A stretch of 64,000 bases of DNA. Origin: Blastocystis sp. Blastoise. Its lineage: Eukaryota > Protista > Bigyra: Opalinata. Positions 1 through 21,446 of the stretch are shown here, one piece after another. Position 1 is the stretch's first letter. Each line of letters opens with the position of its first letter. The notes beneath the pieces are model-generated. The model was given only the letters and a program-made list of their open reading frames with translations, was not told where the DNA came from and did no database searches. Both the position numbers and the translations under genes were made by a program. The stretch is from contig JBBPEB010000033.1 of the NCBI GenBank assembly GCA_039096225.1, positions 1,178,001 through 1,242,000 of the forward strand. The letters are read 5' to 3'.

Positions 1-1308
1 ATTCTTCAGGTTTCGTAATAGCGAATTGTTCTACTTTATCAAATTGATGTACTCTGAAAATACCCCAAGTATCTTTACCATGAGCACCAGCTTCTTTACG
101 GAAATTGGTAGAGAAACCAGTATATTTAAGAGGTAAATCTTTTTCATCTAACCATTCACCCATGTGATAACCACAAATAGGTTGTTCAGAAGTAGCAATT
201 AAATACTTTTCATCTCCATCTTCACCTTGAACATGATATAATTCTTCATCAAATTGAGCTAACTCGGCAACACCCGCCATAACATCTTTATTCATAAAAT
301 AAGGAGTTTGAAGAGTAGTATAACCTCTCTTAGCATTCCATTGAAGAGCATACATAATAATAGCTTGATTCAATAATACAGCATTACCCTTAAGGAAATA
401 AGCTCTATGACCAGCTACTTTATTACCTCTTTCAGGCTCGTAACCATCAATCATCCATAATAACTATATATAGGGGATTCATTTATATTTATTAGTATAA
501 AAATTATATATATGTTAATAAATAGTTGATGATAATAATGATAATAATAAAATATATAATAATAATAATAATAATAAAATATATAATGATAATAATAAAA
601 TATATAATAATAAGAATAATAATAATAATAATACTATATACTTCATGATGAGAGAACATCTTTCCATCAGTATTTACACGAGGTTCACCCCATTTCCAAG
701 CAACTACATTAAAAGCCTATTTAATAATAAGAATAAGAATATAATAAGAATATAATAAAATATATTATAATAAAATATATTATAATAAAATATATAATAA
801 ACATATAAATACTTCATCTTTATTAACGGGAACTGAAGGATCTAAAATGTTACCGATTTGATTTAAAGTAGAATCTCTTTTCTTTTGGACTTCAGCAGCT
901 TTCTTTTGATTCTCTTCAATCTTATTCGATAACTCTTTAACTTGAGCGGTTAATTCATCAGCATTCTTTCCTTCTTTTCTTCTCTTACCAATCTAAAGAA
1001 TAAAAGATAATGAACTCATTTAACCTAAAAAAATATATACTTCAGTAGAAAGTTTTCTCTTTTCAGCAAGCATATTATCACCATTCTTCATCAATACAAC
1101 TAATTCCTATATATATTAAATAAAAATTATAGAAACAAGAAAGAAAAAAGGGGAAAAAAATCATATATAGATAAACAATAAATACTTGATCTAAAGCAAT
1201 GGTATCATCAACAAGTTGAACATTAGCAAATCTCTTTCTTTGAGATTCTCTTACAAGTTCAGCATTACCACCTTTATAATCACGAAGAAGATTAATATCT
1301 ATCGGCAT
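1..1308 (-). CDS. SARS1: Seryl-tRNA synthetase, cytosolic type; multi-exon, 3' end runs off the window
   Basis: N-terminus MPIDINLLRDYKGGNAELVRESQRKRF. Later exons give IGNILDPSVPVNKDE, MIDGYEPERGNKVAGHRAYFLKG, TPYFMNKDVMAGVAELAQFDEELYHV, YLIATSEQPI and motif 2 FRKEAGAHGKDTWGIFRVHQFDKVEQF. Confidence 0.96.
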
Positions 1309-2086
1309 TCTACTCTACAAGTTGTTTTGCAACAACAAACAATAATTATAATTCTTTTTTAAATTAATTAAATATGTCAAAAAACAAATAATCATTCTTT
1401 AGCCATAACTGAATGAACCGTTTACTGATGAACCAATTATCAAATAGAATGAAAGAAAGAATTTTTTCGATCAATCTTCTTTCGCGGGGATTTCTATTTT
1501 TTCTCTTGAAATAGATAAATATCTGGAATTAAGAGACTATTTAATAAACACCATATTTATTTTGTGTGTCATTCACCTCCAATTCATTTGCTTATTTTAT
1601 TGTGACAAACTCTTGTTCATATACTTTTTTTTAAAGTCATTTTCATTTAGGTAGAGGCACCTATTTTTTAAAAAGAATCCATTTAGATGGCATTCCTATC
1701 ATTGTAGAAAGGATGAACTCCAGAATTTGTCGTTAATGATGATGAGTTCATTTCAGAAAAACAAACAATAATAATGGTGATAAGTGCTTTATATACTTTT
1801 AGAATTGTCGTAAAAGTATGGTGCCAACTGTTGTAAGTAGTTTTCTGAAACATTTAGGAGTAAATAAAATAAATTTAAAAAAAGTAATCATGATAAGAAA
1901 AAAAAATGCTCAAAAGTGATGTCCAGCTATTTGTAGGAGTATATATGTTATATATATAATTAATAGAAAATAAACTCATCAAGGATCCATCACACGTAAC
2001 CTTTTTTGTTTTCTATTTTTGTTTTCTATTAAAAAAGGATCCATAAATGAATAAATATTTTTATACTGGTAAATAAAGTATAATCT

Positions 2087-4411
2087 ATGTCTTCTGAAAG
2101 TGACTATTATAGTATATTACAGATTCCACACGATGCAACCGTTGAGGACATCAAAGTATATTTTATTTTTTTCTTCATGTTGTTATTCTATATGAAGAGG
2201 TCATATGTGAATCTAACAAGTAAGATTGATAAGAAAACAAATGATATAGAAATCCTCAATGAAGTATTTTTTTTAAATTTTATTTTATTCACTAGTATTT
2301 AGTATTATTCAATACAGGAGGCATATGAAGTATTAGTGGATCCTACGAAAAAGGTATTTTTTTTTCCAGTGAATTAGTAATTATTTCAGTTTTATAATGA
2401 TAAGCTTTGATATTTATTTATAAGATGTATTTTTTAGGAACAATATGATTTCTTTCTAAATAGTAACTCAACTCTTTCTGTGAATATGAGTTTTAACAAT
2501 AATTTATCATGGTTTAATATTTATTTGATGCTTATTCAACGTAGCGATAAAGAGCGAATTGCTACTTTTATACTGTTTTTTATATTACTTTGCTATCTCT
2601 GTTTAAATTATTGTATATATTTATATTGAATGTATATATATAAAAGTATATTTATTATTATATATATAAATAGTATTAATAATGCTGAGAATGGATTATG
2701 TTATACAAGTTGAATGGTGGATTATAGTATCTCCTATTTGGGCCACTTTTGTATATATAGAGTAGTTATTTTAATGTATAATAATAATAATTTTATTATA
2801 AATATTTTATATATATTAATTATTTTAATTTATAATAATATTTTTTATGATTAATATATATTATAAATATTTTATATATATTAGTTATTTAATTTATAAT
2901 AATAATTTTTATGATAAATATATATTATAAATATTATATATAGTTAATTATTTCTATTTATATGTAAAATATTTATCATATATATATGTTAAAAACATTA
3001 TATATATATATATTATGTATTGAGTATTTATAGATATTTCTTGTTATGATATTATTTTGCACTTCTTTAATATCATCAGACAATATGATCGAAGAAACAA
3101 ATCAGGCACATATGTATCGAATTTTGAAGATAATGTATAATAATACTATATATATATGTTATTGTTTTTATTAGTATATGAATATATCAATAGTATAACG
3201 AATTCATTCTATAGATATATGAATATCTTTGGCTTTTTAGTGATTATGCAATTCATACTTATTGTTATTCGACTAGATACTTATATTCACGGGGATTATC
3301 TATTTTTATTTTTTCCATCACATTTTTTATATCTATTCCTTGTTACAAAAACAATATTATTGTATATTATTCTATTCTTATTAGGTTATTATACTTAATG
3401 TTTTATATTTTTGTTGTTGCATATATATATCATTATTTTATTTTTATTATGTTTATTCTATATTATTGTTATATGTATATTATATACATCTTCATTCATA
3501 AAACTATCACTCTAGAATCTATTACTGTTATAAGCCTATGTATTCATTAACAAAAATCATTGATATTTCTCTGTTAGAGCTCTGTGTATTGCTCTTGGCA
3601 TTATTATACGATGGTTATTACCCTTATAAATATAATTATCTTCCACTTATTGCATTTCTATGCTATTTATTATGTAAACTTATTCGACAAGTATCAATTT
3701 TTATTTTTATTTTTATTATTATTATTAATATTATTATTATTAATATTATTATTATTATATATAGATTCACCAATTAATATCATTCAATAAAAAAAAGGCA
3801 AAGAATCCTTTACTTGTTCATGTATATATTTATAACTATAAATATTTAAATTAAGTTATTCTTCCATATCATGAATTTCTTCTATAGTTAGAAGATTTTA
3901 TTTATTCAGCAAAAGCTGTTATGACCATTTTTATTGATATTGGACTTGCGATAGCTTCTATCATCATTTGGCTAACTTCCACTTATTCTTTCTCTACTCG
4001 ATATACTTATTCCGTTATACCTATTATTATATCTGTATGTATAGAAATTTTTCATGATTATCATAATCTATCATTTATCTTTCATGATTATCATAGTCTA
4101 TCATTTATCTTTCATAATTATCATAGTCTATCATTTATCTTTCATGATTATCATAATCTATCATTTATCTTTCATTATCACCTTTATATACAACTGATCT
4201 ACTCTCTATATATTAATAATACACATTTATCTAGTCGTTAGCTATAATTATCACACTCATTTGTGCGTTGGTTTCTTCTAAACAGAAACATCAACAATTC
4301 ATCAACGACAGTCCATATCTAAGAGTATTTAATACGTATCACAATAATCACTCCTCAAAACACGAAAAAAATACAACAACTTCAATGCAATCTCCAACGA
4401 CAACAATATGA
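2087..4411 (+). CDS. J-like (DnaJ) domain fused to a multi-pass membrane region (TMEM185/Fragile-X-F-like); multi-exon
   Basis: Spliced N-terminus DYYSILQIPHDATVEDIK|RSYVNL...|YYSIQEAYEVLVDPTKK|EQYD has J-domain helices but no HPD. Hydrophobic segments follow (LRMDYVIQVEWWIIVSPIWATF, LIVIRLDTYIHGDYLFLFFP). Last exon ends MQSPTTTI-TGA at 4409-4411. Confidence 0.7.
4051..4180. repeat. 30-bp intronic minisatellite, about 4.3 copies (TTCATGATTATCATARTCTATCATTTATCT)
   Basis: Units start at 4051, 4081, 4111, 4141 and 4171 (partial), inside intron 4035-4233. It explains the repeated FHDYHNLSFI peptide in the ORF track. Confidence 0.92.
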
Positions 4412-5085
4412 TTAAAATCTCTTCTATTCCTAAAGTTCTGTATATAATCTCCATTCCTGAATTGTTTCTAATCTTCTTCAAAGATATTTTCTCTTTTTTT
4501 TTCTCCATTTCATGATTCCTCCTTTTCTTTTCTTTTCATTTCTGTGCATTAACGTTTTTATTCTTCTTTATCGCATTGAATTCCATCATTCAATTCGTAT
4601 TTGAAAAACAAAAAATGGACTTAAAAGAAAAAGATCTCAAAGAATAATTCATTGAATAAACCACAATAATTTCATTTATTTAATGAGAAATATGGAAATC
4701 AAATAAATCAGTAAAAAATGATCCTATTCACAAAAAAAAAACTCGTAAAACACAAGGAGAATGAATGATAGCAAAATAAATAAAAAAATCTTGGATTCCA
4801 TGACTCGTATCATTCTCATTCTTACCTTCATTTGTGAATTCTCCATGAATCCAAGATTATTGTCGCAATAGTCGCTATTGAGCAGGGGTCACCACGTAGT
4901 TACTCGTTAAGCGAAAGGACCAAAATTTTTGCGCTTAAATAACAAAGTTACTTTTTTATTACCGTGATTTTCATAGTTATTTTAAGTGATGAAAACACGG
5001 GAAAAACAAAAATATAAGGGAAAATGTTTTGCTAAACCAAAAAGAACATTCTATATTAGATAAACTTTTTTTATTGTTTAAATAC

Positions 5086-7820
5086 ATGGAACAGTACTTT
5101 AAAAAATTACAAGTATATTAATAGTAATATATATATATATATATAGATTGACAAGTCTACAACAGACGAAAAAAAAAAAGATGATGACATAATTACAGAA
5201 GAAACGAATAATAAACCAGATATTAATCCTAAATCCAAATATTATAGTGAAGTAAAAGAAGGAGTTAAAAGATATAATGCCAATCCAGTTGTTTATGGAT
5301 TTAAAAAATTAACAAAAAACTCCTATTTTTGTTTAATCTGTGAGTCTACTCTCACGTGTAAAGGTTATGAAGCCTCAAAACTCTTCACTCATTTCAAGAA
5401 TAAACATGGGTTAAGCAAATACACATATGATGACATTCAAGAACTCTTAAAAGATCATAATGAAAACACAGAATACTCAAATTCTCTCTTTAGCTTTTCA
5501 GATTTATCCAGTAAGCTTTCATATTTCATCGCCTACTCCATTTCAAAGAATGGATACAGCTACAGAACTGGAGAAAAATTAGTTAAACCTATTATTGAAG
5601 AATATGAAAGGTTAAAGAATGTCAAAGTCCTTTCTAATCTTCCGTTATCCTCAAGCAGTATCAAAAGAAAAAGTGATGAAATTGCTTTGACAATTCAACA
5701 AGAAGTAATAAATAGGATAAGACAATCAGGATCATTTTCTATTCAGCTTGACGAGTCAACTGACATAGAAATGAAATCCTATTTACTCGTTTATGCTAGA
5801 TACGAATATAATAAAAAGTTTACTGAATCATTTTTAAGTATTTTTCAGATTAGTTCCAAAACAGGTGATAATATATTTAACATGGTAGATAATTTCTTTA
5901 ATAATAATAACCTTCTGTGGAATAATTGCGTATCAGCTACTTTTGACGGTGCTTCGAATATGAATGGAGACAAAAACTCCTTCAAAACACGAGTACTAGA
6001 GAAGAATAAGAATTGTATGTTCATCCACTGTTTTCTTCATAGAGAAGAACTCTGTGTAAACTGTTTACCAAAATACTTCACTAATATATTCAAAAGTGCT
6101 GTTGAGATAATTTCATATATAAAGAAGTCTGCTGTTAGACAAGACGAATCCAATAATTACAATATTGATAATGAATATTCATTAACCTCTTCTATCTTCT
6201 CTCCTCAAGATAACATACCTGATTCCCCTAATAATATATCTTCTTTAGAGATAGAATATAATAAAGTAGTTGAATCCCTTTTAGATACATCTGATACAGA
6301 TAATAATATAGATAATAATATTCATGAAGTTTATAGTAATGATAAGAAGGAAGAAAAAAAGGAAAAAAATATTAGAAGTTATAAACTTCTCCTTTATTGC
6401 CCTACAAGATGGCTTTCATGCCATTCATCAATTAAAAGATTTAATTTACTTAGAAATGGAATAACACTAGTAATAAAAAAGGATAAAGAAAAGAAGGACT
6501 TATATAACACCATTATTGATACTAACTTCATAGCTTCAATGTTATACCTTGAGGATGTTACCAGTTTATTCTATGATTGTAATAAATCAATGCAAGGACA
6601 GCATAGATATATATTTGGGTTAATAGACATTATGAAGGATTTATTTATAAAATTATCGTTGAGATTAGAAAGACTAATAAATAATAACGATTATTCATCA
6701 TTTACGAAACTTAAGGATTATGTATCTACAACCAAGCTTGATATTAATTCAATCATATTTTATATCAAAAATCATCTAATAACTCTTCGACGTAATTTAC
6801 TGAATTATTTCCCAGAAATACTAAATTATATTGGTAGTGATGAATCGTATCTTCAAGACCTTAATGAATATTTAATAGACCAAGAAAATACACATAATAC
6901 ATCAAATATATCTCATGAAGTGAATAGTAATGTTAATAACAATACATCAGTAGTATCAAACCAATTTAATATTCTTGGATCATTACAAGGTTGCGTATCT
7001 CCAAATGGAGTTGTAAATGGCTTAATAACCTATGTTGACATAGTTACTCAGCAATTAATAGAAACTCAAGTAACGATTAGAATTGACTTTCCATATTTAG
7101 TATATGGATACACTTTAGGTAGTATTTCTGGTGTTCTTAATAATTTCCCTAATAGTAGTATTCAAGGACAATACAATGGAATCATTAGTAATATAAATAT
7201 AATTCAGGCTAATATCAATTGTATAATAACTCTTGGGGCAATCATTCCAAATGAAATAAGTAATAATACAAATCAAGGAGAAGTACAAAAGAATAAAAAG
7301 CAGAAGAAAACGAATAGTAACATAAAAAAACCAAAAAATACACCAACAACTAATCTTATTGATCATTCTTTATATTGGATTACTAATCCATTTTCAAAAG
7401 TAGCTGACGAAAATAAAATGGAGTTTCATGTTAAAGAAGAGTATTTCTGTTTACTTGCTGATAAAACATGTAGAGAAGAATTTAATAACGTACCAATAGA
7501 TGAGTTCTATATAAGCCATAAGAGTCGTTTTCCATTATTATATGATATAGCCAAGAAATGTTTTCTTCCCTTTGCAACTTCATATCTCTGTGAGAGCGGT
7601 TTCAGTCATCTCGTGTATATAAAAAACAAATACAGAAACACTATTAATCCAACAACCCAAATGACAATTGGATTAACTTCTGATATCATTGATTCTTCAT
7701 CACTTATAACTACTGTTTTAGAGCGTATGTATATTATAAGTATTATATTCATAATTCACATAATATAGAATCTATTCTTAATTATATATAGATAAATTAA
7801 AGAAAAAGAAACTCGATTGA
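5086..7820 (+). CDS. hAT transposase (BED finger, DDE core, C-terminal dimerisation domain), Buster/ZBED5-like; apparently intact
   Basis: ATG at 5086 (MEQYFKKLQ), intron 5113-5146, then an open frame continuous with ORF 5687-7768. Motifs: BED finger CLIC...HFKNKH, FSIQLDESTD, TFDGA, HCFLHREEL, PTRW, LPFATSYLCESGFS. A probable last intron 7725-7791 gives ...HKLKKKKLD-TGA at 7820. Confidence 0.93.
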
Positions 7821-8249
7821 TAACATCTAGCAACAAAATCACTAATCTAATCCAACTACTTAATTACTGTATTTATACTACAAAGTACATTGATTTCTTT
7901 TACTATTAATATTTATATATTTATATTGTTTTCATTATATTAACTATTTGTATTCCATAATGTTTTATTGTTACATTATAATTTGTATTGTTTTAATTAA
8001 CTCAAGAAGATATACTGTTATCTTTTAAATATAATTATAAATAGATGACATTGAATATTCCTTTATATATTTGATTATATCAATAGTATATAGTTTCTTA
8101 ATTAGAATCACTATTCCTTAATAATTTTTATCTATATTTCAATTATTTTTCTAATTATATTCTTTTTCAAGTACTATTATATTCAGATCAAACGAATAAC
8201 TGAGAAATATTATTACTTATATGAAAAATAAATATTATTTTAGAAGTAA

Positions 8250-11200
8250 TTATTTCATATATACTAATCTCTCTAGTATAATACTTTAAAACAATATCCA
8301 ATACTAATAAGAATCTTTATTCAATCAAAAGTATAATATACAACTATAAAGTATACTCTTCTTAAATCAAATAGTATATCTAATCAAGAAGATTAAATAT
8401 ATAAATAAATAGCAAAATATATTTTCAATCATAATGTATCAATAGAAAGAACCAAATAACTACTAAAATCATTTACCTGACTTATCAATCAAATATCACA
8501 AAGAGAGTGATAACAATTGGTTCCTAAAGAATATACTATTTTCCAAAACATATATATAAAGTGGAATCTTAAATCGTTTACACCAACAATTTTATATTTA
8601 TACATGAATTCAAAAGGAAAGAGCAAGATGTGTTATATCTATATTAAGTATCATATGAGGGATTATATATATCCGAAAGAGTATTAGAATATATGATATA
8701 ATAGAAAGTAATGTGGATTTTATATTATAATAGCATGAAATAAGTATTAGATTAAGATTCATGATATTATATAAAGGTTAGCATTTGAAAGATTATCAGA
8801 AGAAAAATTATTGGAAAGATTGACATAGACTTAATGAGAATATATTTATATATGTAGATCATAAAGAAGATAACTAAAAACTTGTAAATAAAATTTGAAG
8901 TTAAGAAGAAGGAAGAATGCATATATCAACTGAATTTATAATCGGCAGTGATAAATGAGTAGAAGAGACGATAATAATTATTTTTAGTATATTTTTAAAG
9001 ACAATAACATGAAGAGAGAACAATATTCGTATAAAAATATATATAAATCTATAAATAGAAATACAATAAATAAACCATAAGAAGTAATAAGAAGTTGATT
9101 TCTATATTATATCATCATGAGTAAAAGAACAAACGGAGTAAATTGTATATAATAGTTAGACATTGTATAAATAATATGAAGTAACGGCTGATAACGGAAA
9201 AAGCAGGTGTAAATATATATAAGCATATTAATTATGTACATATGCACTTAAGAAGATATAATATCTAAAGTAATAGAAATGAAAATAAATTTAGAAAATA
9301 AACAATTCGAGAACTACCTCAACCGTATTCAACAAAATAGAAGAAATACAAATAGTATTATAGTATTCATATCAGCATGAATGTAAGATGTATATAGATA
9401 ATAAGTTAAAGGGAGTTGAAATGGTTTAAAGTAAATAGAGATAGTATTTTATTAAATAACAGTACGAAAGAAATATGGAGACATAGATCCTATTATATAA
9501 TTATATCATTTTTGGAAAATGAGAGTAATTAGAAATGAGAAAGAATAGAAGGAATAGAAGGTGTAGATACTAGGCTTTTATAAAAAATTAAATAAGAAGA
9601 AGAGAATGTACACAATAATAATAAATAAGAGTAGCCATATAAATATGTTTAAGTAACAAAAAGAGCAAAACCTTAGAATGAAGAGAAATAATAAAAATAT
9701 CTTTTGTGGTATATAGATAATAGTAATACAACAATGAGAACAAATCCTAACTTTGATTACTAAAATCCATGATGAGTAGTGCCAAGAGAGAAATTGTTGG
9801 AAAGAAAAAGAAAGGAAACGAACGAGAAGAATTATAAAAAACGATAGTAAGAAATAGGACTAATAAAAATATTCAAACCCATATTATTTAGACAAGAAAT
9901 GGAAAATGCTTCTGAAATAATAACTGTGTAAATAGGAAATACAATAAACATGAGCATTAAAGAATATGAAGAGAGATAATGATGAAGCAGTATTAAAATG
10001 AATAAGTCTAATAATGAGCACACAATATACACAATAGAAGCACTAGAAATAAAAGAAAAGTGGATAAAGAAATAGAGATAATGAGGAAGTATAGGATTAA
10101 AAATAGGCACAAAAATAAGTAGACCATGGGATAATATATAGAACATGAGAAAACGAAGAAAACCATAAATGAAGGATATGAATATGTATATGAAGAGTAT
10201 ATTTGAATGAAATATGAAAATAAATTAATTGAGTATGTTTTCAATTATAGAAACAAATATAAAAATAAATCTGTTAGAATAATAAAACTAAGATATATAA
10301 TAATATATAATAGTGAGGAATTTGTAATTATTAAAGGAAAAGAAAATCGTCATTAAATCTCATAGTATGTTTAATAGAGAAATATGAAACGACCATTAGA
10401 ATAACATAAGAACATAAAGAATTCTATCATAGGAGAAAAAGGAATATCAACTAAGGATAATATAAAAGTAATATAAAAATAGCACATCTAGAAACTCTTT
10501 AATAAAGGGAAAAGAACATGCAGGTGAAGTATTACGAATGATCACATAATAATTGAAAAGCACCAGAAGAAATGAAGAGTCTAATAAATATAAAGATACC
10601 ATACGAAGAAGATAGGAAGAGACTGAAAAACCAGAAAACTAATACAATTAATGTAATGCTATAATACCTTAAAAGAACAAAAGATGAAATAAGATAAGGA
10701 AATAAGATAAGGTTTATAACTAAAAATTCAATATATAATAGTAGACTAACGATAACATGAAGAGAAGTTGAAGAATAATTAACCAAGATGAAAATATATA
10801 CAAAGAATAAAAAGAAATTCAAAAATTTTATACAGAAAACTACAACAAAGAAATATCATATAGATACTTTCCTGTATAATAGCATATTAAAGAATTACAC
10901 AATAAGATACTAAAACATTCAAAAACTTATAATAGTAAACTTGATAGAATAAGAGTACATGATAATATTGTAATATAGACAAAAGGATTTAAGGATGAAA
11001 AGAAATAAACATCAATTGTTACTAATCTGCTACTATCTTCAGTAGAAACTTATGTATGTTAGTAACCATAGTAAGTATTAATCGCAGAGATGAAGTGTTT
11101 AAGTATTTATTAAATACTAGAATAAGAATAAGAAAATTCATAATAAGTAAATCTATAAGAAAATGTCATCGTTATATATAAATACCATTATAATACAGTA

Positions 11201-11760
11201 TGAAAAAAGGAAGTATCAGAAAAATAAAAAACAAAAACAAAATAATTAGCACTTATAAAGTAGAACAAGCAATCAAAAGCACATTAGTCGAATAAAATCA
11301 AACATACAAACAACATAAATAAAGATCTCATTAATCGCAAAGTTACAAAAAGAAAAATGAGTATACTAATTCAAGAAGAGAAGTAAGGAAGTTTGGTGAG
11401 TAACCAAATCAGATGTAAATAATAAATGGAAGGCAACAAACTGTAAATATTCATAAAATTATACATTGCAAGTAATCATTCCAAGAATAAGTAACTGATA
11501 AGTATCCATCACGTAGCACATTGTAAGATATGTGTATTGAACACTGATCATAACGAGCAAGTACGTAACAAAGCAATCAACAAACAATGGGAAATCATCA
11601 TGTAGTAGATATTGACTAGTATTTAAGAGGAGTTCACAATGCAACAAAAACCAATATGAATCTTAATGATAAACCATTATTAGTTCAGAAAGCAGATAGA
11701 AAGCAAGTTTGAAAAAATATTATAGGCAATAATCTTATTCTGATTTGAATCTTTAACAAA
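8250..11760 (+). mobile_element. Possible heavily decayed non-LTR (LINE-like) retroelement nested in the hAT
   Basis: About 3.5 kb of purine-skewed, non-microsatellite sequence with no ORF. Remnants occur in LINE order: frameshifted RP(I)RIT..RILS near 10390-10430 (RT 'RPI' motif) and CKICVLNTDHNEQVRNK at 11522-11572 (degenerate CCHC knuckle). Boundaries are approximate. Confidence 0.3.
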
Positions 11761-12304
11761 AGAATGAAATTATCATTGAAATTTTTAAAGAATGACTGAA
11801 GTTTTAAAAATAATCAAATAGTCAGTCCTTTCCTGACTTTGGTGACACTTGCCACCAAATTTTGTGACACTTTTTCAGCCATGCTTAATTCTGCTGAATT
11901 TATCAAACACATAAGGAAGTTTTTTGTAACAAAATATGATACTCATGAGTTTTGTCATCAGACTGAATGAAAGGCTTTTCACCTTATTTGTATACATGGC
12001 CATAAATCATAATATTTTTGACAAAGTTAACCTAAATATAAAAAATGTCTTTATAAATGAGCAAATAAAGCTATCATTTATTTGATATAAGCCATCAAAC
12101 ATATTCAAACTAAACGAAGCAATGAAATAATTACTTTAAGCATTAATATACAAAAGACAGAAGAAAAGAAACTATTCAACTTTTTAATCACATTTAGGTA
12201 CTTCTTGATACCTATATTCAACCCAGTTTCATTTAATATGTATATATATATATGAAAGAATAATAAAATAACAATAAAAAATATATACATATATATATAT
12301 ATAT

Positions 12305-14919
<2,615 letters not shown>

Positions 14920-14923
14920 TATA

Positions 14924-15215
<292 letters not shown>

Positions 15216-15221
15216 ATATAC

Positions 15222-15916
15222 AATAAGTTGTGCCGTTTCATCATCTGGACTCTTCTTTAGTTTCTCCATAAATTCATATTCGGCCTTAATAGTCATGGTA
15301 TATGTACAATCATGGTCATCCGTTTTATATTGGAAATGATGATGTATGGGTCGAATGACGCTCTGTATGTCGATACGAAGAATGTTCGAAGAGAGTAACG
15401 TTTTGTGCTATAGAGAAATATAATTATATATGTATTAATATTATGTTTTTAATGATATATAGAGAGTAATAGAAAAAAACAAAAACAATAATAATACTAT
15501 TATTATTATATATATATACATAATTAGAGTCTTTACTCGCTAATCCAACTCTATCTAAGAATACTTGTAAAGTCTTTGTATATAGGGCGGGGATGAAGGG
15601 AGAGCGAGTAACGAAGTGGAACAACAGGAGAATCTGTAAAGGGGAGGAAAATTATATATATATATATATATAAAACTAAAAGAATAAGAGAGAATGACAT
15701 CATAATTCAAACTAATTTATATATATATATACCTTAAACAGTGTCTTCTACAAGATATAAAGAAGGATAAATAGAGGGATCATCGAAGAATGTTGTAAGA
15801 CAAAGAGAATGTCCCGCGGGGAATTAAGAGATAGGAAAGTAGTCATCACTATGGAGAGCAGTTCATTAAGGGATTCCGCGGGAAGAAGAAGGAGGGAAGA
15901 TGATGGAATATCTACA

Positions 15917-15962
<46 letters not shown>

Positions 15963-17763
15963 TAATATATATAGAGTAATAAATGTAGAATATGTATAGT
16001 AATAAATATAGTAATAATAGATAATATTATATATATATACTTGATATCTAAGGAATTCAGGACTATCATATAAATCATGTATATTATCTTTATTCAATTG
16101 TTCTTGTAATAGATATACATTCTTATATTTGGTTCCCGCGTCGATAGTTGCCGCCAAGGAAGTCACGAGAGGTTCATTGTTATTAATCATAATGAATGAG
16201 AAGAGAGAGAAAGAGGAAGTGAAGTATTGACGGATGTCCAGTGTAAGAAGGAGAAATGACTAGAAAAGAGGGGAATATATAGCTAGAATAAATATAGGAA
16301 TATATAGCTAGAATATATATAATAATAAGCATAATAATATGTGGAATAACAATAATAAGTAATTATAATAGAGTATAAAAAGAGAAAAATAAGAGAATGT
16401 CACAGTATGCGCCACATACGACGATCTACTTTGATATTTTGCTTTAGAATTCGAAGAACAGTTTTGTCAGATATAGGACGTGCTTTGAACGATAAATAAT
16501 TAATAATGGCACTATATATAAAAGTATATATAGGTATATATAGTGAGAAAAAATAGATATATATGGTTATATAAAATACTATACATATATATATATACTT
16601 CATAGTAGCTTCTCCATTGATTCTATCTACAAATAGATTACGACTATGAATATTCTCAACCCCACGGGAAATCATCAAATCAAAGGGTAATTGTAAATAC
16701 CTATATAGTTATATATATAGTTATATATATATTAGTTATATATATACAGATCAATAAGAGTAGGTATATATGTAGAATTGAGACCCAATCGGAGTAGAGA
16801 ATAAAGAGCAATACCATCACTCACCTATATATATAGTTATATATAGTTATAAATATAGTTATATATAGTTATATATAGTTATATACTATTCTTATAATAT
16901 CGTTAAAGAATTGAGTGTAATCTTTGTTATTCTTATACCTATAATATAATAGTATATAATAATAAATAATAATAAGATATAATAATATATAATAGTATAT
17001 AACATATAATATACTTATCAAGATTGTCTAGAAGAAGTCGGCCTTGACTTTCTTTGCTCATCAGATCCCCGCGGGGATCTGTGTATAATTGATGCATAGT
17101 ATCAATAAGTGTATAGATAGGGGGTAATTGTATATATGTATATAAAGACAGGGAAAAGAAGCATATAAGTCTTCAGATAGAGTCCTAATATATATATATT
17201 GATAAATAGATTAAAAAAGAATATATATATATATATATATACCATCTGACTTTAGATTGTTCAATTAAACTTAATATCATGTCCATTGTTAGTATCTGAT
17301 TATATATATAAGAATTCGTCTTTATTCCATTTTGATATAGTTTATTTAATGTATTTTTAGTTACATAAGAACTACATATATATATATATTATGTATATCG
17401 GACATATTCTGTAGAGTTGATTGAGCATATATATTGTTGAAAAGTGGCTTAATATTGATGAATTGAATCAAAGCAAGACTTCCCGCCAATTTCACAGTCA
17501 ATAAACCAGTATTTCTATATACATATATATATATATATAGATCATATATAATAAGAAGATTAGCAGAAAATACACAGAATATATATTATTCATGTATTAT
17601 ATATACTATTATATATACTTATATATACTATTATATACATATATATTGTCCATAGATAGCTACTGTTTTATACTCATTTAGAGGGATACGAGGTAATAAA
17701 TAAGAAAAAAAAATTAGATACATGACCATATTCCCGTGAATACATAACAATTAATAAATCAGC

Positions 17764-17805
<42 letters not shown>

Positions 17806-17978
17806 TTGATATACAATTAATAGTATAGGAATTATAACGTGCTTTAATGTTCTTTGAGGGATGGAGGAGTGCGTCAGTGAGGGACTTATAAGAAGTAACT
17901 ATAAGAATGTATATATATATAATGATGATTATGAAGATATATATATACAGGTAGATCTTTCAATAGGTTGAAGACGAC
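15222..17978 (-). pseudogene. Captured multi-exon fragment of an unidentified, probably alpha-helical host gene ('gene X')
   Basis: About 13 GT-AG-bounded exons, e.g. YLQLPFDLMISRGVENIHSRNLFVDRINGE, SFLLLTLDIRQYF...EFLRYQ, YVDIPSSSLLLLPAESLNELL...YIL*KTLFK, HKTLLSSNILRIDIQSVIRP...ETAQLI. In-frame TAG stops near 15750 and 17660 and a frameshift near 17150. I see no UTP20 resemblance. Confidence 0.6.
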
Positions 17979-18041
17979 TATATATATATATATATTTATT
18001 ATTATTATTAATATTATTATTATATAAAATAATATATATAC

Positions 18042-18730
18042 ATCAAGTTGTTGGAAGCTCTTTAGAATACGAAGTGCATGGAGACGATGTGTATGTAAAG
18101 GGGAGGCGAGAAGTGGTGCGAGGGTAGGGATAAGGGCCTGAAGGCGAGAGGATGAAAGGTAAGGACTCTCAGAAGATAATGATGTATATATATATGCAAA
18201 AGTAGCTAAAATCATAGAATTATTTTAATTTATAGGAATCAATTCAGATAATATTGAAAATAATTATTCTTGTTGTTGTAAGGAATCCGTAATAGTATCT
18301 CTTTCAAAAATATTTATATATATATAATGAATAATTTTTGACCAATAAACTTCATTCTCCATATATAAACCTATATATATATATAATAATAAGTATATAT
18401 AATATAATAAATATAATAATAATATATATATACAATCTCGTTTATCATTTAATTGGCTTAATAATTGAATAGCTTCCTTATCTATTGTTCACTAATTGTT
18501 GATATATATATATATAAAATAATAAATGATAACAACTGGAAATAATTCTATAGTTGAACTATATATATATTATTTTCATAATCATAAATATCATAAATAC
18601 TATAATAAATATACTAATAAATATAATAATAAATATATACTCATCAATATTTTTATACATTAAAGGACCATAAAATAATTCTAAACATAGAAAGAATGCC
18701 ACACTTAATTAAAGTATTGACCTCGTATAT
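18042..18730 (-). pseudogene. UTP20: Captured UTP20 fragment A (upstream part), with nonsense mutations
   Basis: LIPTLAPLLASPLHTHRLHALRILKSFQQLD matches the UTP20 'NL...H.IRL.TLRIL..F' motif that normally lies about 30 aa before the start of fragment B. The same exon has two in-frame TAA stops (QQQE*LFS, PIN*NNS). Confidence 0.65.
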
Positions 18731-19280
18731 CTATATATATAATTTGTTATCAAAAATGAAATAATATTCCTTTTAAATATAAATAAGAAAATAACGATCA
18801 CTATAATAAACTAATATACAAATAAATCAATGAAATAATAATGATAAAAAGCAATTATAATATAATTAATATAAATACTAAATAAACCTTATAGATAACG
18901 CACAATAAATACTCTTGAAAAATACTGATCATCCTGCACTATAAAATAAAGATAAATCAAATAAATATTACAAATGAAGAAACGAATTATATACAAAAAA
19001 TATTTGTTGATCCATTTGAACCATCTGGAATGCTATAGATCCTGATTTCACAGTATAAAGAGTTGTTTAAAAGCTAAAAGCCTTGATACCTAAAGAAAGA
19101 AAGTAATTAAGTAAAGCAGATTATAAAAATTAAAATAAATACTCAAGGCGAATACTCTTGATAAACTAAGTTAATTAAATTAAACCAAAATAAATGATCG
19201 TATCAAGAGATAATCAAAATAAATATATAAAAGAACAAGTTTCATAAAAAGATGTTTTTCCAAGAAATAAAAATAAAAAT

Positions 19281-19354
19281 GCCTCTTGCGAGATTCGATC
19301 CAGCGACAATTACCATAATAGCTACAGCGCTGGTCAACTATACCAACCGATTTC
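19281..19354 (-). ncRNA. tRNA-derived Pol III-like unit 1 (degenerate pseudo-tRNA) inside the hAT
   Basis: Minus strand GAAATCGGTTGGTATAGTTGACCAGCGC...GCTGGATCGAATCTCGCAAGAGGC, 74 nt. It has an A-box-like TGGTATAGTTG, a B-box-like GGATCGAATC and a downstream TTTTT. The acceptor stem does not pair. Confidence 0.55.
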
Positions 19355-19645
19355 TCAATTTTATTTTTTCATGTGTTCTATATAATAAGTTTAAAATTAT
19401 TTGATATCTTCAAATATTATATTTATGCTCTTTTATTACATTTATAACATTCTAGAAATACTTAGAATTGTTTTTAAACAATAATTACTATTTTTTGAAA
19501 AAAAAGTTTGTTGATATGTTGATTCTAAACTAAAAAGCAGATATCAATGATGTAAATAATGTTTACAGATAATAAAAATGAAACAAAGTTGATTTTAAAT
19601 AAAATCATTGTAAATAGCAGTCAAAAGAAAAAGTTTAAAAAAATA

Positions 19646-19718
19646 GTTCCTCGTAAGATTCGATCCGTCCACTATGTAAAAATTTTATACGCACTGACCA
19701 TTTGACCAAACAACTCCC
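19646..19718 (-). ncRNA. tRNA-derived Pol III-like unit 2 (degenerate pseudo-tRNA), paralogue of unit 1
   Basis: Minus strand GGGAGTTGTTTGGTCAAATGGTCAGTGCG...GACGGATCGAATCTTACGAGGAAC, 73 nt. It has an A box TGGTCAAATGG, a B box GGATCGAATC and a downstream oligo-T run. The upstream TTATTATAT...ATGAAAAA is shared with unit 1. Confidence 0.55.
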
Positions 19719-21446
19719 TTATAATATTTTTCATCAAGTCATATAATAATTGCAAAGCTAGTGACTACTAACCGTTTTTTTATTTTTTTATTTTTAAACA
19801 TAAAAACAATATATTTTATAATATAAATATTATAAATGTGTTGTGTGACTTATTCTACATATAAAATACATTTTAAAACCATTTTATAAGGCTATTAAAA
19901 ATCATTTTGTTGGACGTATTGTTTTTTCAAATCCAGCTTTTGTTCATTGTATTGTTTTTTGTTTGATTTTTGAAAAATAATATTTTAATATGCTTTTCGT
20001 TTATTTAATTTTTATTACTTGTCAGGATGTATCTGTACAGTCCCTACAAGACTACTTCATGATATTTTATAAAAATAAAAACTTTTTAATTACATTATTA
20101 TTTTTTATAATATTTTTTAGTATTTATTGACATTATTTTTCATTATAAACATAAATAAAAGTCTTTAAAATAATATACAAAAGAATATCTTAAGCAATTG
20201 ACTTTTGTCACAAAATAATTTTTATTTGTCACCCAAATTAACACAAATAGTCAAATATAGGAATCATACTTGTTGTTATTTGATGACTTATGAACTTTTA
20301 AGTCATGTATCTGTCACAACATGTGTCACAAAAATCTTCTTAGATGACTTATTTCAAAACATTTATACATTATATATCAAAATAATATGTTTTAAGTTAA
20401 AAACTGTCATGTCATAGTATAATAGTCAATGAATGAATTACTTTTTTATGTCACCCGGTCTTTTTTTCATGAAAAGTGTGTAAATTAATGCGTCTTGATG
20501 AGCTGAGTTTGAAAATTTTTTGACCACTAATAATCAGTATTTAGCCAATTTAAAAGAATTCAAAGTTTTGTAAAAATTTGAAGCATGTATTGCTATTATG
20601 ATTCTACTACTACTATATTATTAAGATCTACACATAATCACGCTTTTTTCCTAATTGTTAAATACTTAAAGACAATCAATCATTATAACTACATGATTAA
20701 CATTCTAAAAATGCTAAAAAATTCAATTTGCTCTCTAATTATAATATGTGTAAGGTTATTATTTATTCAACAACAAATCAAATTACATCAACAAACACAA
20801 ACCTCGTGTAAAATGTCAAAAACATCATTATTGAGCTTATCTCGATCCTCTAAAAATTATTAAACGTTTTATTCTATGTAGATTTATAAAAATTAAAAGA
20901 AAAATGAAATAAAAGATTTAAGCGCAAAAACAACATCGAAAAGCGCACTTTGCGCTTAAAGCGCAGTTTTGGCACACCCTGCTATTGAGCAAAAACATCG
21001 CTTTTTAGTAAGAATGAACAACCAATAGAATGACAAATAAAAATATAAAAATTAGTGAAAAAGACGCGTCAATGAAAACAGATTTCGGCCAGTCTCCGAT
21101 ATTACTCGCTATTCTCGAATTTATAAAAAAGTTAAAATCTCAATCAAAACCATGGTTTCTTAAAACTTGGTTTCTTATTGGTTCTCTCGTTAGGCTTGGG
21201 CATAAGACATTCTGTGTCATAATATGTCCATAATAAACCAATAAATATCTTTCATGATATATATACAATTTCCTTGATCGAATAACAAATACTTGAACAT
21301 TTGTCAGTCTTTTCATGGACACCATTTTCAGCCTTTCAATAATTCTCTGCTGACGCTTTAGCATTTCATAGTATTTTTGAGATTATTCTTTTTATTAGAT
21401 TTATTTTTGTTTTTCGTATGATATTTTCCTGTTTTTCATCATAGCT

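Follow-up and report, generated by a model that had tools for sequence, protein, structure and literature searches.

Is a 16-kb segment of Blastocystis DNA that starts and stops like a hAT transposon, with a transposase gene near its left end and pieces of a host gene further in, a single mobile unit, or is it a short element that happens to lie beside host DNA? The segment occupies positions 4883-20981 of the window, by which we mean the whole stretch of 64,000 nucleotides that was analysed, starting at about position 1,178,001 of contig JBBPEB010000033.1 of Blastocystis sp. Rus-B ("Blastoise", assembly GCA_039096225.1). We consider it highly probable that it belongs, as one copy, to a young family of autonomous hAT DNA transposons, 16.1 kb long, that carry UTP20 sequence as cargo, because of its ends, its target-site duplication, its intact transposase gene, the existence of at least 19 copies that share the left tip and the presence of the same cargo in 15 of them.

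Blastocystis is the commonest eukaryote living in the gut of humans and, to our knowledge, its mobile DNA has never been dissected before. Our full-text literature search turned up no account of hATs or of transposons with gene cargo in this organism, and the transposable elements of Rus-B have been reported as a bulk figure only, 5.6-7.5% (PMC10690189). The host of the strain is the Russian tortoise, and its genome comprises 33 contigs, 33.3 Mb in all, with 23.1% G+C (PMC10690189). R9 Nanopore reads were assembled with Flye --meta, and racon, Polypolish and POLCA served for polishing, in which short reads were used. The window has a G+C content of 18-29%, numerous introns and the standard genetic code. 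Since long open reading frames (ORFs) are scarce, a ciliate-type code was considered and rejected: the standard code yields the long transposase frame, and ORFs obtained by using TGA as the only stop are noise. Proteins of "Blastocystis sp. Blastoise" at NCBI match the window's transposase frame with 100% identity, and locus L005 (JBBPEB010000033.1:1173086-1195820) corresponds to window positions 1-17820 at 100% identity.

Ends of the element and target-site duplication

The element measures 16,099 bp and its features are collected in Table 1. The sequence-only reading of this DNA had reported a perfect 8-bp duplication, CAGGG/CCCTG ends, a 15-bp subterminal inverted match and clustered AAGCGC motifs, and each of these was recovered at its place. 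The 8-mer CTATTGAG occurs five times in the window when both strands are counted, against about 2.4 expected, and with the right tip fixed, the eight bases next to it would repeat the left-flank 8-mer by chance with a probability of about 1e-5 to 1e-4. The two tips agree perfectly in their five terminal bases and in 8 of 11 bases overall. Further in, the 15-mer TTTTTGCGCTTAAAT is found 44-58 bp inside the left tip (4926-4940), and its reverse complement 52-66 bp inside the right tip (20916-20930). Five of the six AAGCGC sites of the 64-kb window lie at most 65 bp from the tips, four of them at 20920-20964, while in 18 other loci of the family (about 300 kb) the motif is nearly confined to the homologous left subterminal site, so that the right-end cluster is a specific signature and not an effect of composition. 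The window copy thus shows an 8-bp duplication on both sides, short inverted-repeat tips of the CAG/YARNG type and, at both ends, short subterminal repeats that are candidate binding sites for the transposase.

Since hATs are usually 2.5-5 kb long and the inverted repeat described here is short, with only five perfect bases, the match at 20982 could be coincidental, in which case the real element would be a few kb long, would end just past the transposase, and the remainder would be host DNA. We looked for a nearer right end of this kind, against which the sequence-only reading had warned, and found none inside the element: its interior has no CCCTG, no further CTATTGAG and no AAGCGC cluster, and the sole internal CAGGG (17149) has no adjoining motif. 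Moreover, the right end at 20981 carries the family-specific 15-mer together with four AAGCGC sites, and 15 copies at unrelated loci remain colinear with the window for 12.9 kb beyond the left tip. A short element is therefore barely conceivable. Neither the right tip nor the transposase had a match when JGI metagenomes were scanned.

A family of nearly identical copies

Starting from nine protein variants in a 90% protein cluster, we retrieved 18 further loci on 12 contigs, which brings the family to at least 19 copies including that of the window, each with different upstream genes and a different flanking 8-mer. The comparison of these sister copies spans the left flank to about window position 17820, and only in the window copy could the right junction and the 3.2 kb before it be read. 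Sibling copies at other sites had been suggested as something to look for, and those found have the expected form: in all 18, homology to the window starts exactly at 4883, next to unrelated left flanks with different 8-mers, and 15 contain the same cargo. These 15 are colinear with the window from 4883 to the limit of the comparison (12.9 kb), where they show 17 substituted columns, 0-7 differences per pair and about 99.9% identity; the remaining differences among them are insertions and deletions (indels) in homopolymers and microsatellites. Divergence among copies is at most 0.05%.

Because 15 copies at unrelated sites share the interior and the cargo, the cargo travels with the transposase and was gained before the burst of copies, not by accretion at the window site. 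Of the two histories that the sequence-only reading had left side by side, movement of the whole as one unit is thus upheld, and growth in place after insertion is excluded. With 19 copies of at least 16 kb each, the family accounts for about 0.9% of the 33-Mb genome, and it indicates that an autonomous hAT can move a payload of 16-22 kb.

The flanking sequences also record how the copies chose their sites. Of the 18 left-flank 8-mers, 13 have T as their second base (p = 0.002) and 12 have A as their seventh (p = 0.02), so that the target pattern read from them is nTnnnnAn, the Ac-type pattern of classical hATs. The Buster consensus nnnTAnnn is not what we observed, as TA occupies positions 4-5 in only two of the 18. 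On the left side, the insertions lie outside the neighbouring called host gene, often less than 350 bp away from it. The exception is L014, where one gene model fuses a host zf-MYND gene to the N-terminus of the transposase.

The copies are almost identical, and the genome was assembled with Flye --meta on R9 nanopore data before short-read polishing; they might also be segmental duplications or an assembly artefact of a repeat, spread without any transposition. This explanation is very improbable, given that all 19 copies break at the same base, the CAGGG tip, beside 19 different gene neighbourhoods, that the flanking 8-mers obey a hAT target pattern, that the window copy has a perfect 8-bp duplication, and that three loci (L001, L004 and L012) have private insertions or deletions.

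The transposase gene

The sequence-only reading had described an open transposase with all catalytic motifs, and this description holds. The gene encodes 882 amino acids, and its frame runs uninterrupted for 873 codons (5147-7768). In an alignment with three relatives at about 30% identity, the only ones found, D211, D276, H303-C304-x2-H307, W431, the glutamate of the C-terminal CE..FS motif and the RW motif are all kept. Pfam Dimer_Tnp_hAT (PF05699) matches residues 789-846 with 22.0 bits (E 1.4e-4), a marginal score, above the gathering cut-off of 21.4, and DUF4371 is matched as well. Precomputed domain matches are to FAM200-ZBED5 RNase-like, DUF4371 and FAM200-GTF2IRD2-like. A direct sequence search of the transposase against solved structures returned no match. 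The AlphaFold model, built on a shallow alignment, is poor, with a mean predicted local distance difference test (pLDDT) of 47; the ten best PDB fold matches of that model are nevertheless all Hermes (E 1.6e-8 to 1.5e-5). At the N-terminus there is a finger of the form C-x2-C...H-x4-H. The BED finger of the sequence-only reading is therefore retained as a CCHH finger with BED-like spacing, but it is not matched by Pfam zf-BED. The predicted architecture would begin with the N-terminal CCHH finger; an alpha-helical insertion would split the RNase-H-like DDE core that follows, and the hAT dimerisation region would lie at the C-terminus. Two long low-complexity inserts are private to the Blastocystis protein when it is compared with its relatives.

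In 10 of the 19 copies the main exon is identical and uninterrupted, with all catalytic residues kept. The other nine (L001, L002 and L012-L018) differ by 1-3 bases in a run of 10-11 A close to the start of this exon, exon 2 (window 5166-5180). Gene models skirt around these variants, which results in products of 842-876 amino acids or in split genes, the latter in two copies. Either errors of R9 sequencing in homopolymers or an on/off switch prone to slippage could account for the indels.

The A-run indels, along with the two split gene annotations and the low-complexity inserts that relatives lack, would also suit a burst that is very young yet already dead, its transposase no longer made or functional and its copies fossils. 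We regard this as possible, though rather doubtful: indels in A-runs are typical of R9 nanopore errors, ten copies retain an identical open frame with all catalytic residues, and a divergence of at most 0.05% leaves almost no time for decay. The element is thus probably still active. If so, Blastocystis would gain its first naturally active DNA transposon for use in transgenesis and insertional mutagenesis, one tolerating at least 13 kb of cargo; the element's ends and transposase are a candidate natural vector for an organism without genetic tools.

The UTP20 cargo

The cargo consists of about 13 kb of non-transposon DNA, namely a UTP20 fragment, two tRNA-like relics and non-coding DNA. A UTP20 profile of about 2700 positions was built from 14 full-length proteins, and the minus-strand ORF pieces were searched singly against it. 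The matches (Table 1) are colinear and fall in separate ORF pieces over 5.4 kb with non-coding DNA between them. The captured intron-containing gene pieces noticed in the sequence-only reading can accordingly be named: judged from its profile matches, the fragment is an internal, intron-containing quarter of UTP20 (profile positions about 600-1270) that lacks the first ~600 and the last ~1400 residues. Since both outer parts are missing, no working UTP20 can be encoded. When representative proteins were searched with the cargo, the best match was only 40% identical.

Table 1. Features of the element and its immediate flanks (window positions)
Feature	Position	Strand	Remarks
Left 8-bp target-site duplication, CTATTGAG	4875-4882		Fits nTnnnnAn
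Left terminal inverted repeat, CAGGGGTCACC	4883-4893	+	Homology to 18/18 other copies begins exactly at 4883
Left subterminal motifs	4907-4940		TTGCGCTTAA/AAGCGC sites, one imperfect and one perfect; 15-bp match at 4926-4940
hAT transposase gene, 882 aa (amino acids)	5086-7820	+	Exons 5086-5112, 5147-7738 and ~7791-7820; two short introns
Purine-rich non-coding spacer, ~4.2 kb	7821-12026		Sister copies hold mobile-DNA insertions here, at 8138 and 9286
Annotated "gene A", 642 aa, UTP20_N	12027-14867	-	Exons correspond to UTP20 profile ~700-1270
UTP20 positions 1205-1266	12782-13006	-	E 0.009, marginal
UTP20 positions 1045-1188	12958-13710	-	E 2e-11
UTP20 positions 841-1036	13665-14387	-	E 6e-36
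(TAA)n array, ~29 units	14389-14474		Inside cargo
UTP20 positions 700-762	14391-14918	-	E 2e-6
Annotated "gene B", 619 aa	14919-18224	-	No Pfam match; UTP20 match only in ORF piece 17889-18224; upper end inferred at ~18215
(TAT)n microsatellite, ~95 units	14924-15214		Inside cargo
UTP20 positions 602-661	17889-18224	-	E 6e-7
tRNA-like relic 1	19271-19360	-	B-box-like GGATCGAATC, then T-run
tRNA-like relic 2	19631-19720	-	A-box-like motif, B-box-like GGATCGAATC, T-run
Right subterminal cluster	20916-20964		Four AAGCGC sites and 15-bp inverted match
Right terminal inverted repeat, minus-strand reading CAGGGTGTGCC	20971-20981	-	Plus-strand end GGCACACCCTG at 20981
Right 8-bp target-site duplication, CTATTGAG	20982-20989		Perfect match to left copy

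The bulk of annotated "gene B" (14919-17888) is low-complexity sequence without UTP20 similarity, and this remainder may be one long intron or filler. In the public annotation, the cargo appears per copy as models of 611 or 642 amino acids plus models of 619-625, or as fused models of 1152-1183. As the UTP20 fragment is annotated as one or two genes in most copies, some 30-40 of the 8,547 Rus-B genes are spurious models, labelled "UTP20_N" or "hypothetical".

In about 190 kb of sampled flanking DNA, no part of the element recurs except in the left flank of L004, where L004:1402-7992 is an inverted and diverged (70-90%) paralogue of window 14420-20206, situated 1.8 kb from the young hAT copy. 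It is annotated as a 794-amino-acid gene and has neither a hAT end nor the UTP20_N exons. This paralogue could represent a piece of the donor locus or a relic of greater age. The (TAT) and (TAA) arrays, both long and perfect, are the sites of length differences among copies and also the places where homology to the paralogue stops.

The paralogue bears on a further explanation, in which the family is real but its right portion heterogeneous, the boundary at 20981 being particular to the window copy, for example as a one-off composite that uses the right end of a small element. The right 3.2 kb and the junction were seen only there, and composites of neighbouring insertions are documented for Pack-TYPE elements (PMC8903248). 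We find this explanation quite unlikely: the L004 paralogue holds window 14420-20206 as one block, which implies that the DNA at 18-20 kb goes with the cargo, the right subterminal 15-mer is the same as the left one, and 99.9% identity up to the limit of the comparison argues for one recent master with one structure.

Two other parts of the cargo had been interpreted in the sequence-only reading. A probable long interspersed nuclear element (LINE) remnant does not survive in 7821-12026: no ORF there is long, and none matches a reverse transcriptase or any other Pfam family, so that this candidate was rejected. The proposed RNA polymerase III units persist as two tRNA-like relics but not as functional units, since neither ARAGORN at default settings nor Rfam calls them; relaxed ARAGORN settings call one of the two. 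Functional tRNA genes and other polymerase III genes were thus rejected, ARAGORN and Rfam being negative for them at both thresholds.

A model for movement and capture

By analogy with Hermes and Ac, the transposase would bind the AAGCGC/TTGCGCTTAA repeats that lie just within the tips, one to two of them on the left and four on the right, excise the whole 16 kb and insert it elsewhere, in intergenic DNA at nTnnnnAn sites, making a staggered cut of 8 bp. Copies could be gained if the donor site is repaired from the sister chromatid, or if the element moves, once replicated, to DNA that the fork has yet to reach. The ancestor of the family would have taken up the ~13 kb of non-transposon DNA a single time, as suggested by the fact that all sampled copies have the same cargo, and the sampled descendants would carry it passively. 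Because introns are present, capture most likely took place at the DNA level, and it could have proceeded by template switching during gap repair, or through re-mobilised neighbouring insertions whose inner ends were later lost.

Several observations weigh against this account. The right end and its duplication were inspected in the window copy only, and the near-identity of the copies may be overstated in part because the assembly, made from R9 nanopore reads, was polished across a repeat. The A-run indels in 9 of the 19 copies are possibly true frameshifts, the Pfam hAT match is barely over its cut-off and the structure model is poor (pLDDT 47). Present-day activity is deduced from the youth of the copies. 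As for capture, there are no vestigial inner ends to back the neighbouring-insertion route.

Passive carriage need not be the whole story. That the element is active and strain-specific, and its UTP20 fragment something other than inert baggage, is in our view unlikely. Were the cargo not inert, about 19 transcribed copies of the UTP20 piece could contribute to control of the host gene by small RNAs or truncated proteins; alternatively, the fragment, which comes from an essential ribosome-biogenesis gene, could have been kept because it is helpful to the element.

Comparison with known hAT elements

All hAT hallmarks that we looked for were found, and the element is an autonomous hAT that has transduplicated a fragment of a host gene. 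What sets it apart is how large it is, the lineage of its host and the signs of recent activity. With it, the capture of genes by DNA transposons, known from plants and fungi, reaches a stramenopile.

Large units bounded by hAT ends are familiar from maize, where in Ac/Ds macrotransposons two far-apart hAT ends mobilise the host DNA between them as one large unit. Those, however, are single events made of two complete elements with their inner ends kept, whereas the Blastocystis element has one transposase gene, no inner ends and a multi-copy family.

The closest precedent is a complete hAT of fungi that carries histone H3, described in Pseudocercospora fijiensis and related Dothideomycetes, with a similar case in Pyrenophora tritici-repentis (PMC6710886, PMC3538342). 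The novelty claimed in the sequence-only reading is narrowed accordingly: an autonomous hAT with a captured housekeeping gene was already known in fungi (PMC6710886), but not described for Blastocystis. Like the element reported here, the fungal one is a complete hAT: it has a transposase, its tips are inverted repeats and 8-bp duplications flank it. It took up the sequence of a host housekeeping gene that was then amplified as a unit (in tens or hundreds of copies in the fungus), and it is oversized for a hAT at 9.5-9.9 kb. The Blastocystis element is longer still, 16.1 kb or 22.6 kb with a nested Helitron, and its host is a stramenopile gut protist. While the fungal cargo is an intron-less retrocopy of a small gene, that of Blastocystis is an intron-containing piece of a very large one. 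Furthermore, the fungal copies bear repeat-induced point (RIP) mutations and show no site bias, whereas the Blastocystis copies are almost identical, not RIP-mutated, and biased to nTnnnnAn.

Pack-TYPE elements, including the maize Pack-hAT (PMC8903248), also have inverted-repeat tips and duplications, and between their ends host-gene fragments are copied around the genome. The re-mobilisation of neighbouring insertions proposed for them by Gisby and Catoni (PMC8903248) could apply to the Blastocystis element, in whose interior no vestigial inner ends were found between transposase and cargo. However, Pack-TYPE elements are non-autonomous by definition (PMC8903248), and since the Blastocystis element encodes its own, apparently intact transposase, we have dropped the label "Pack-hAT" that the sequence-only reading had given it.

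With Hermes, Ac and Buster hATs (PDB 8EDG, 4D1Q, 2BW3; PMC10368747; PMC3517528) the element shares the 8-bp duplication, CAG-type tips and a transposase of the DDE type whose C-terminal domain is that of hATs. As in Hermes (PMC10368747), its short subterminal repeats are more numerous at one end, and its tip resembles the CAGGGGT... tip of the Buster-family element Mar (PMC3517528). It differs from all of these in being 3-5 times longer and in the two long low-complexity inserts of its transposase. Its placement within hAT appears mixed, as the domain matches (FAM200/ZBED5/GTF2IRD2) and the tip are Buster-like, while the target pattern is of the Ac type and not nnnTAnnn (PMC3517528).

Insertions nested in sister copies

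Three loci depart from the common structure. L001 has a private insertion of 4,127 bp (L001:13055-17181) at window-equivalent position 8138, with 19% G+C, in which we found no ORF of 80 or more amino acids and of which the other loci contain no copy; this locus also lacks about 1.8 kb corresponding to window 13287-15079. L004 and L012 share a 6.49-kb insertion at window-equivalent position 9286 (L004:14202-20689; L012:14201-20691) that shows the hallmarks of a Helitron, namely a TC start, a GC-rich hairpin (-19 kcal/mol, z = -5.3) followed after 10 nt by a CTAG end, and a seat between host A and T. Since its ORFs have no Rep/helicase and no other Pfam match, it is probably non-autonomous. A hAT copy with this nested Helitron reaches 22.6 kb.

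In L004, the hAT copy stops at window-equivalent position 9417 and gives way to about 790 bp of (CCCTGG)n/(CCTGG)n (L004:20822-21610). The array is G+C-rich and satellite- or telomere-like in a genome of 23% G+C, and it may mark a healed break or a rearrangement.

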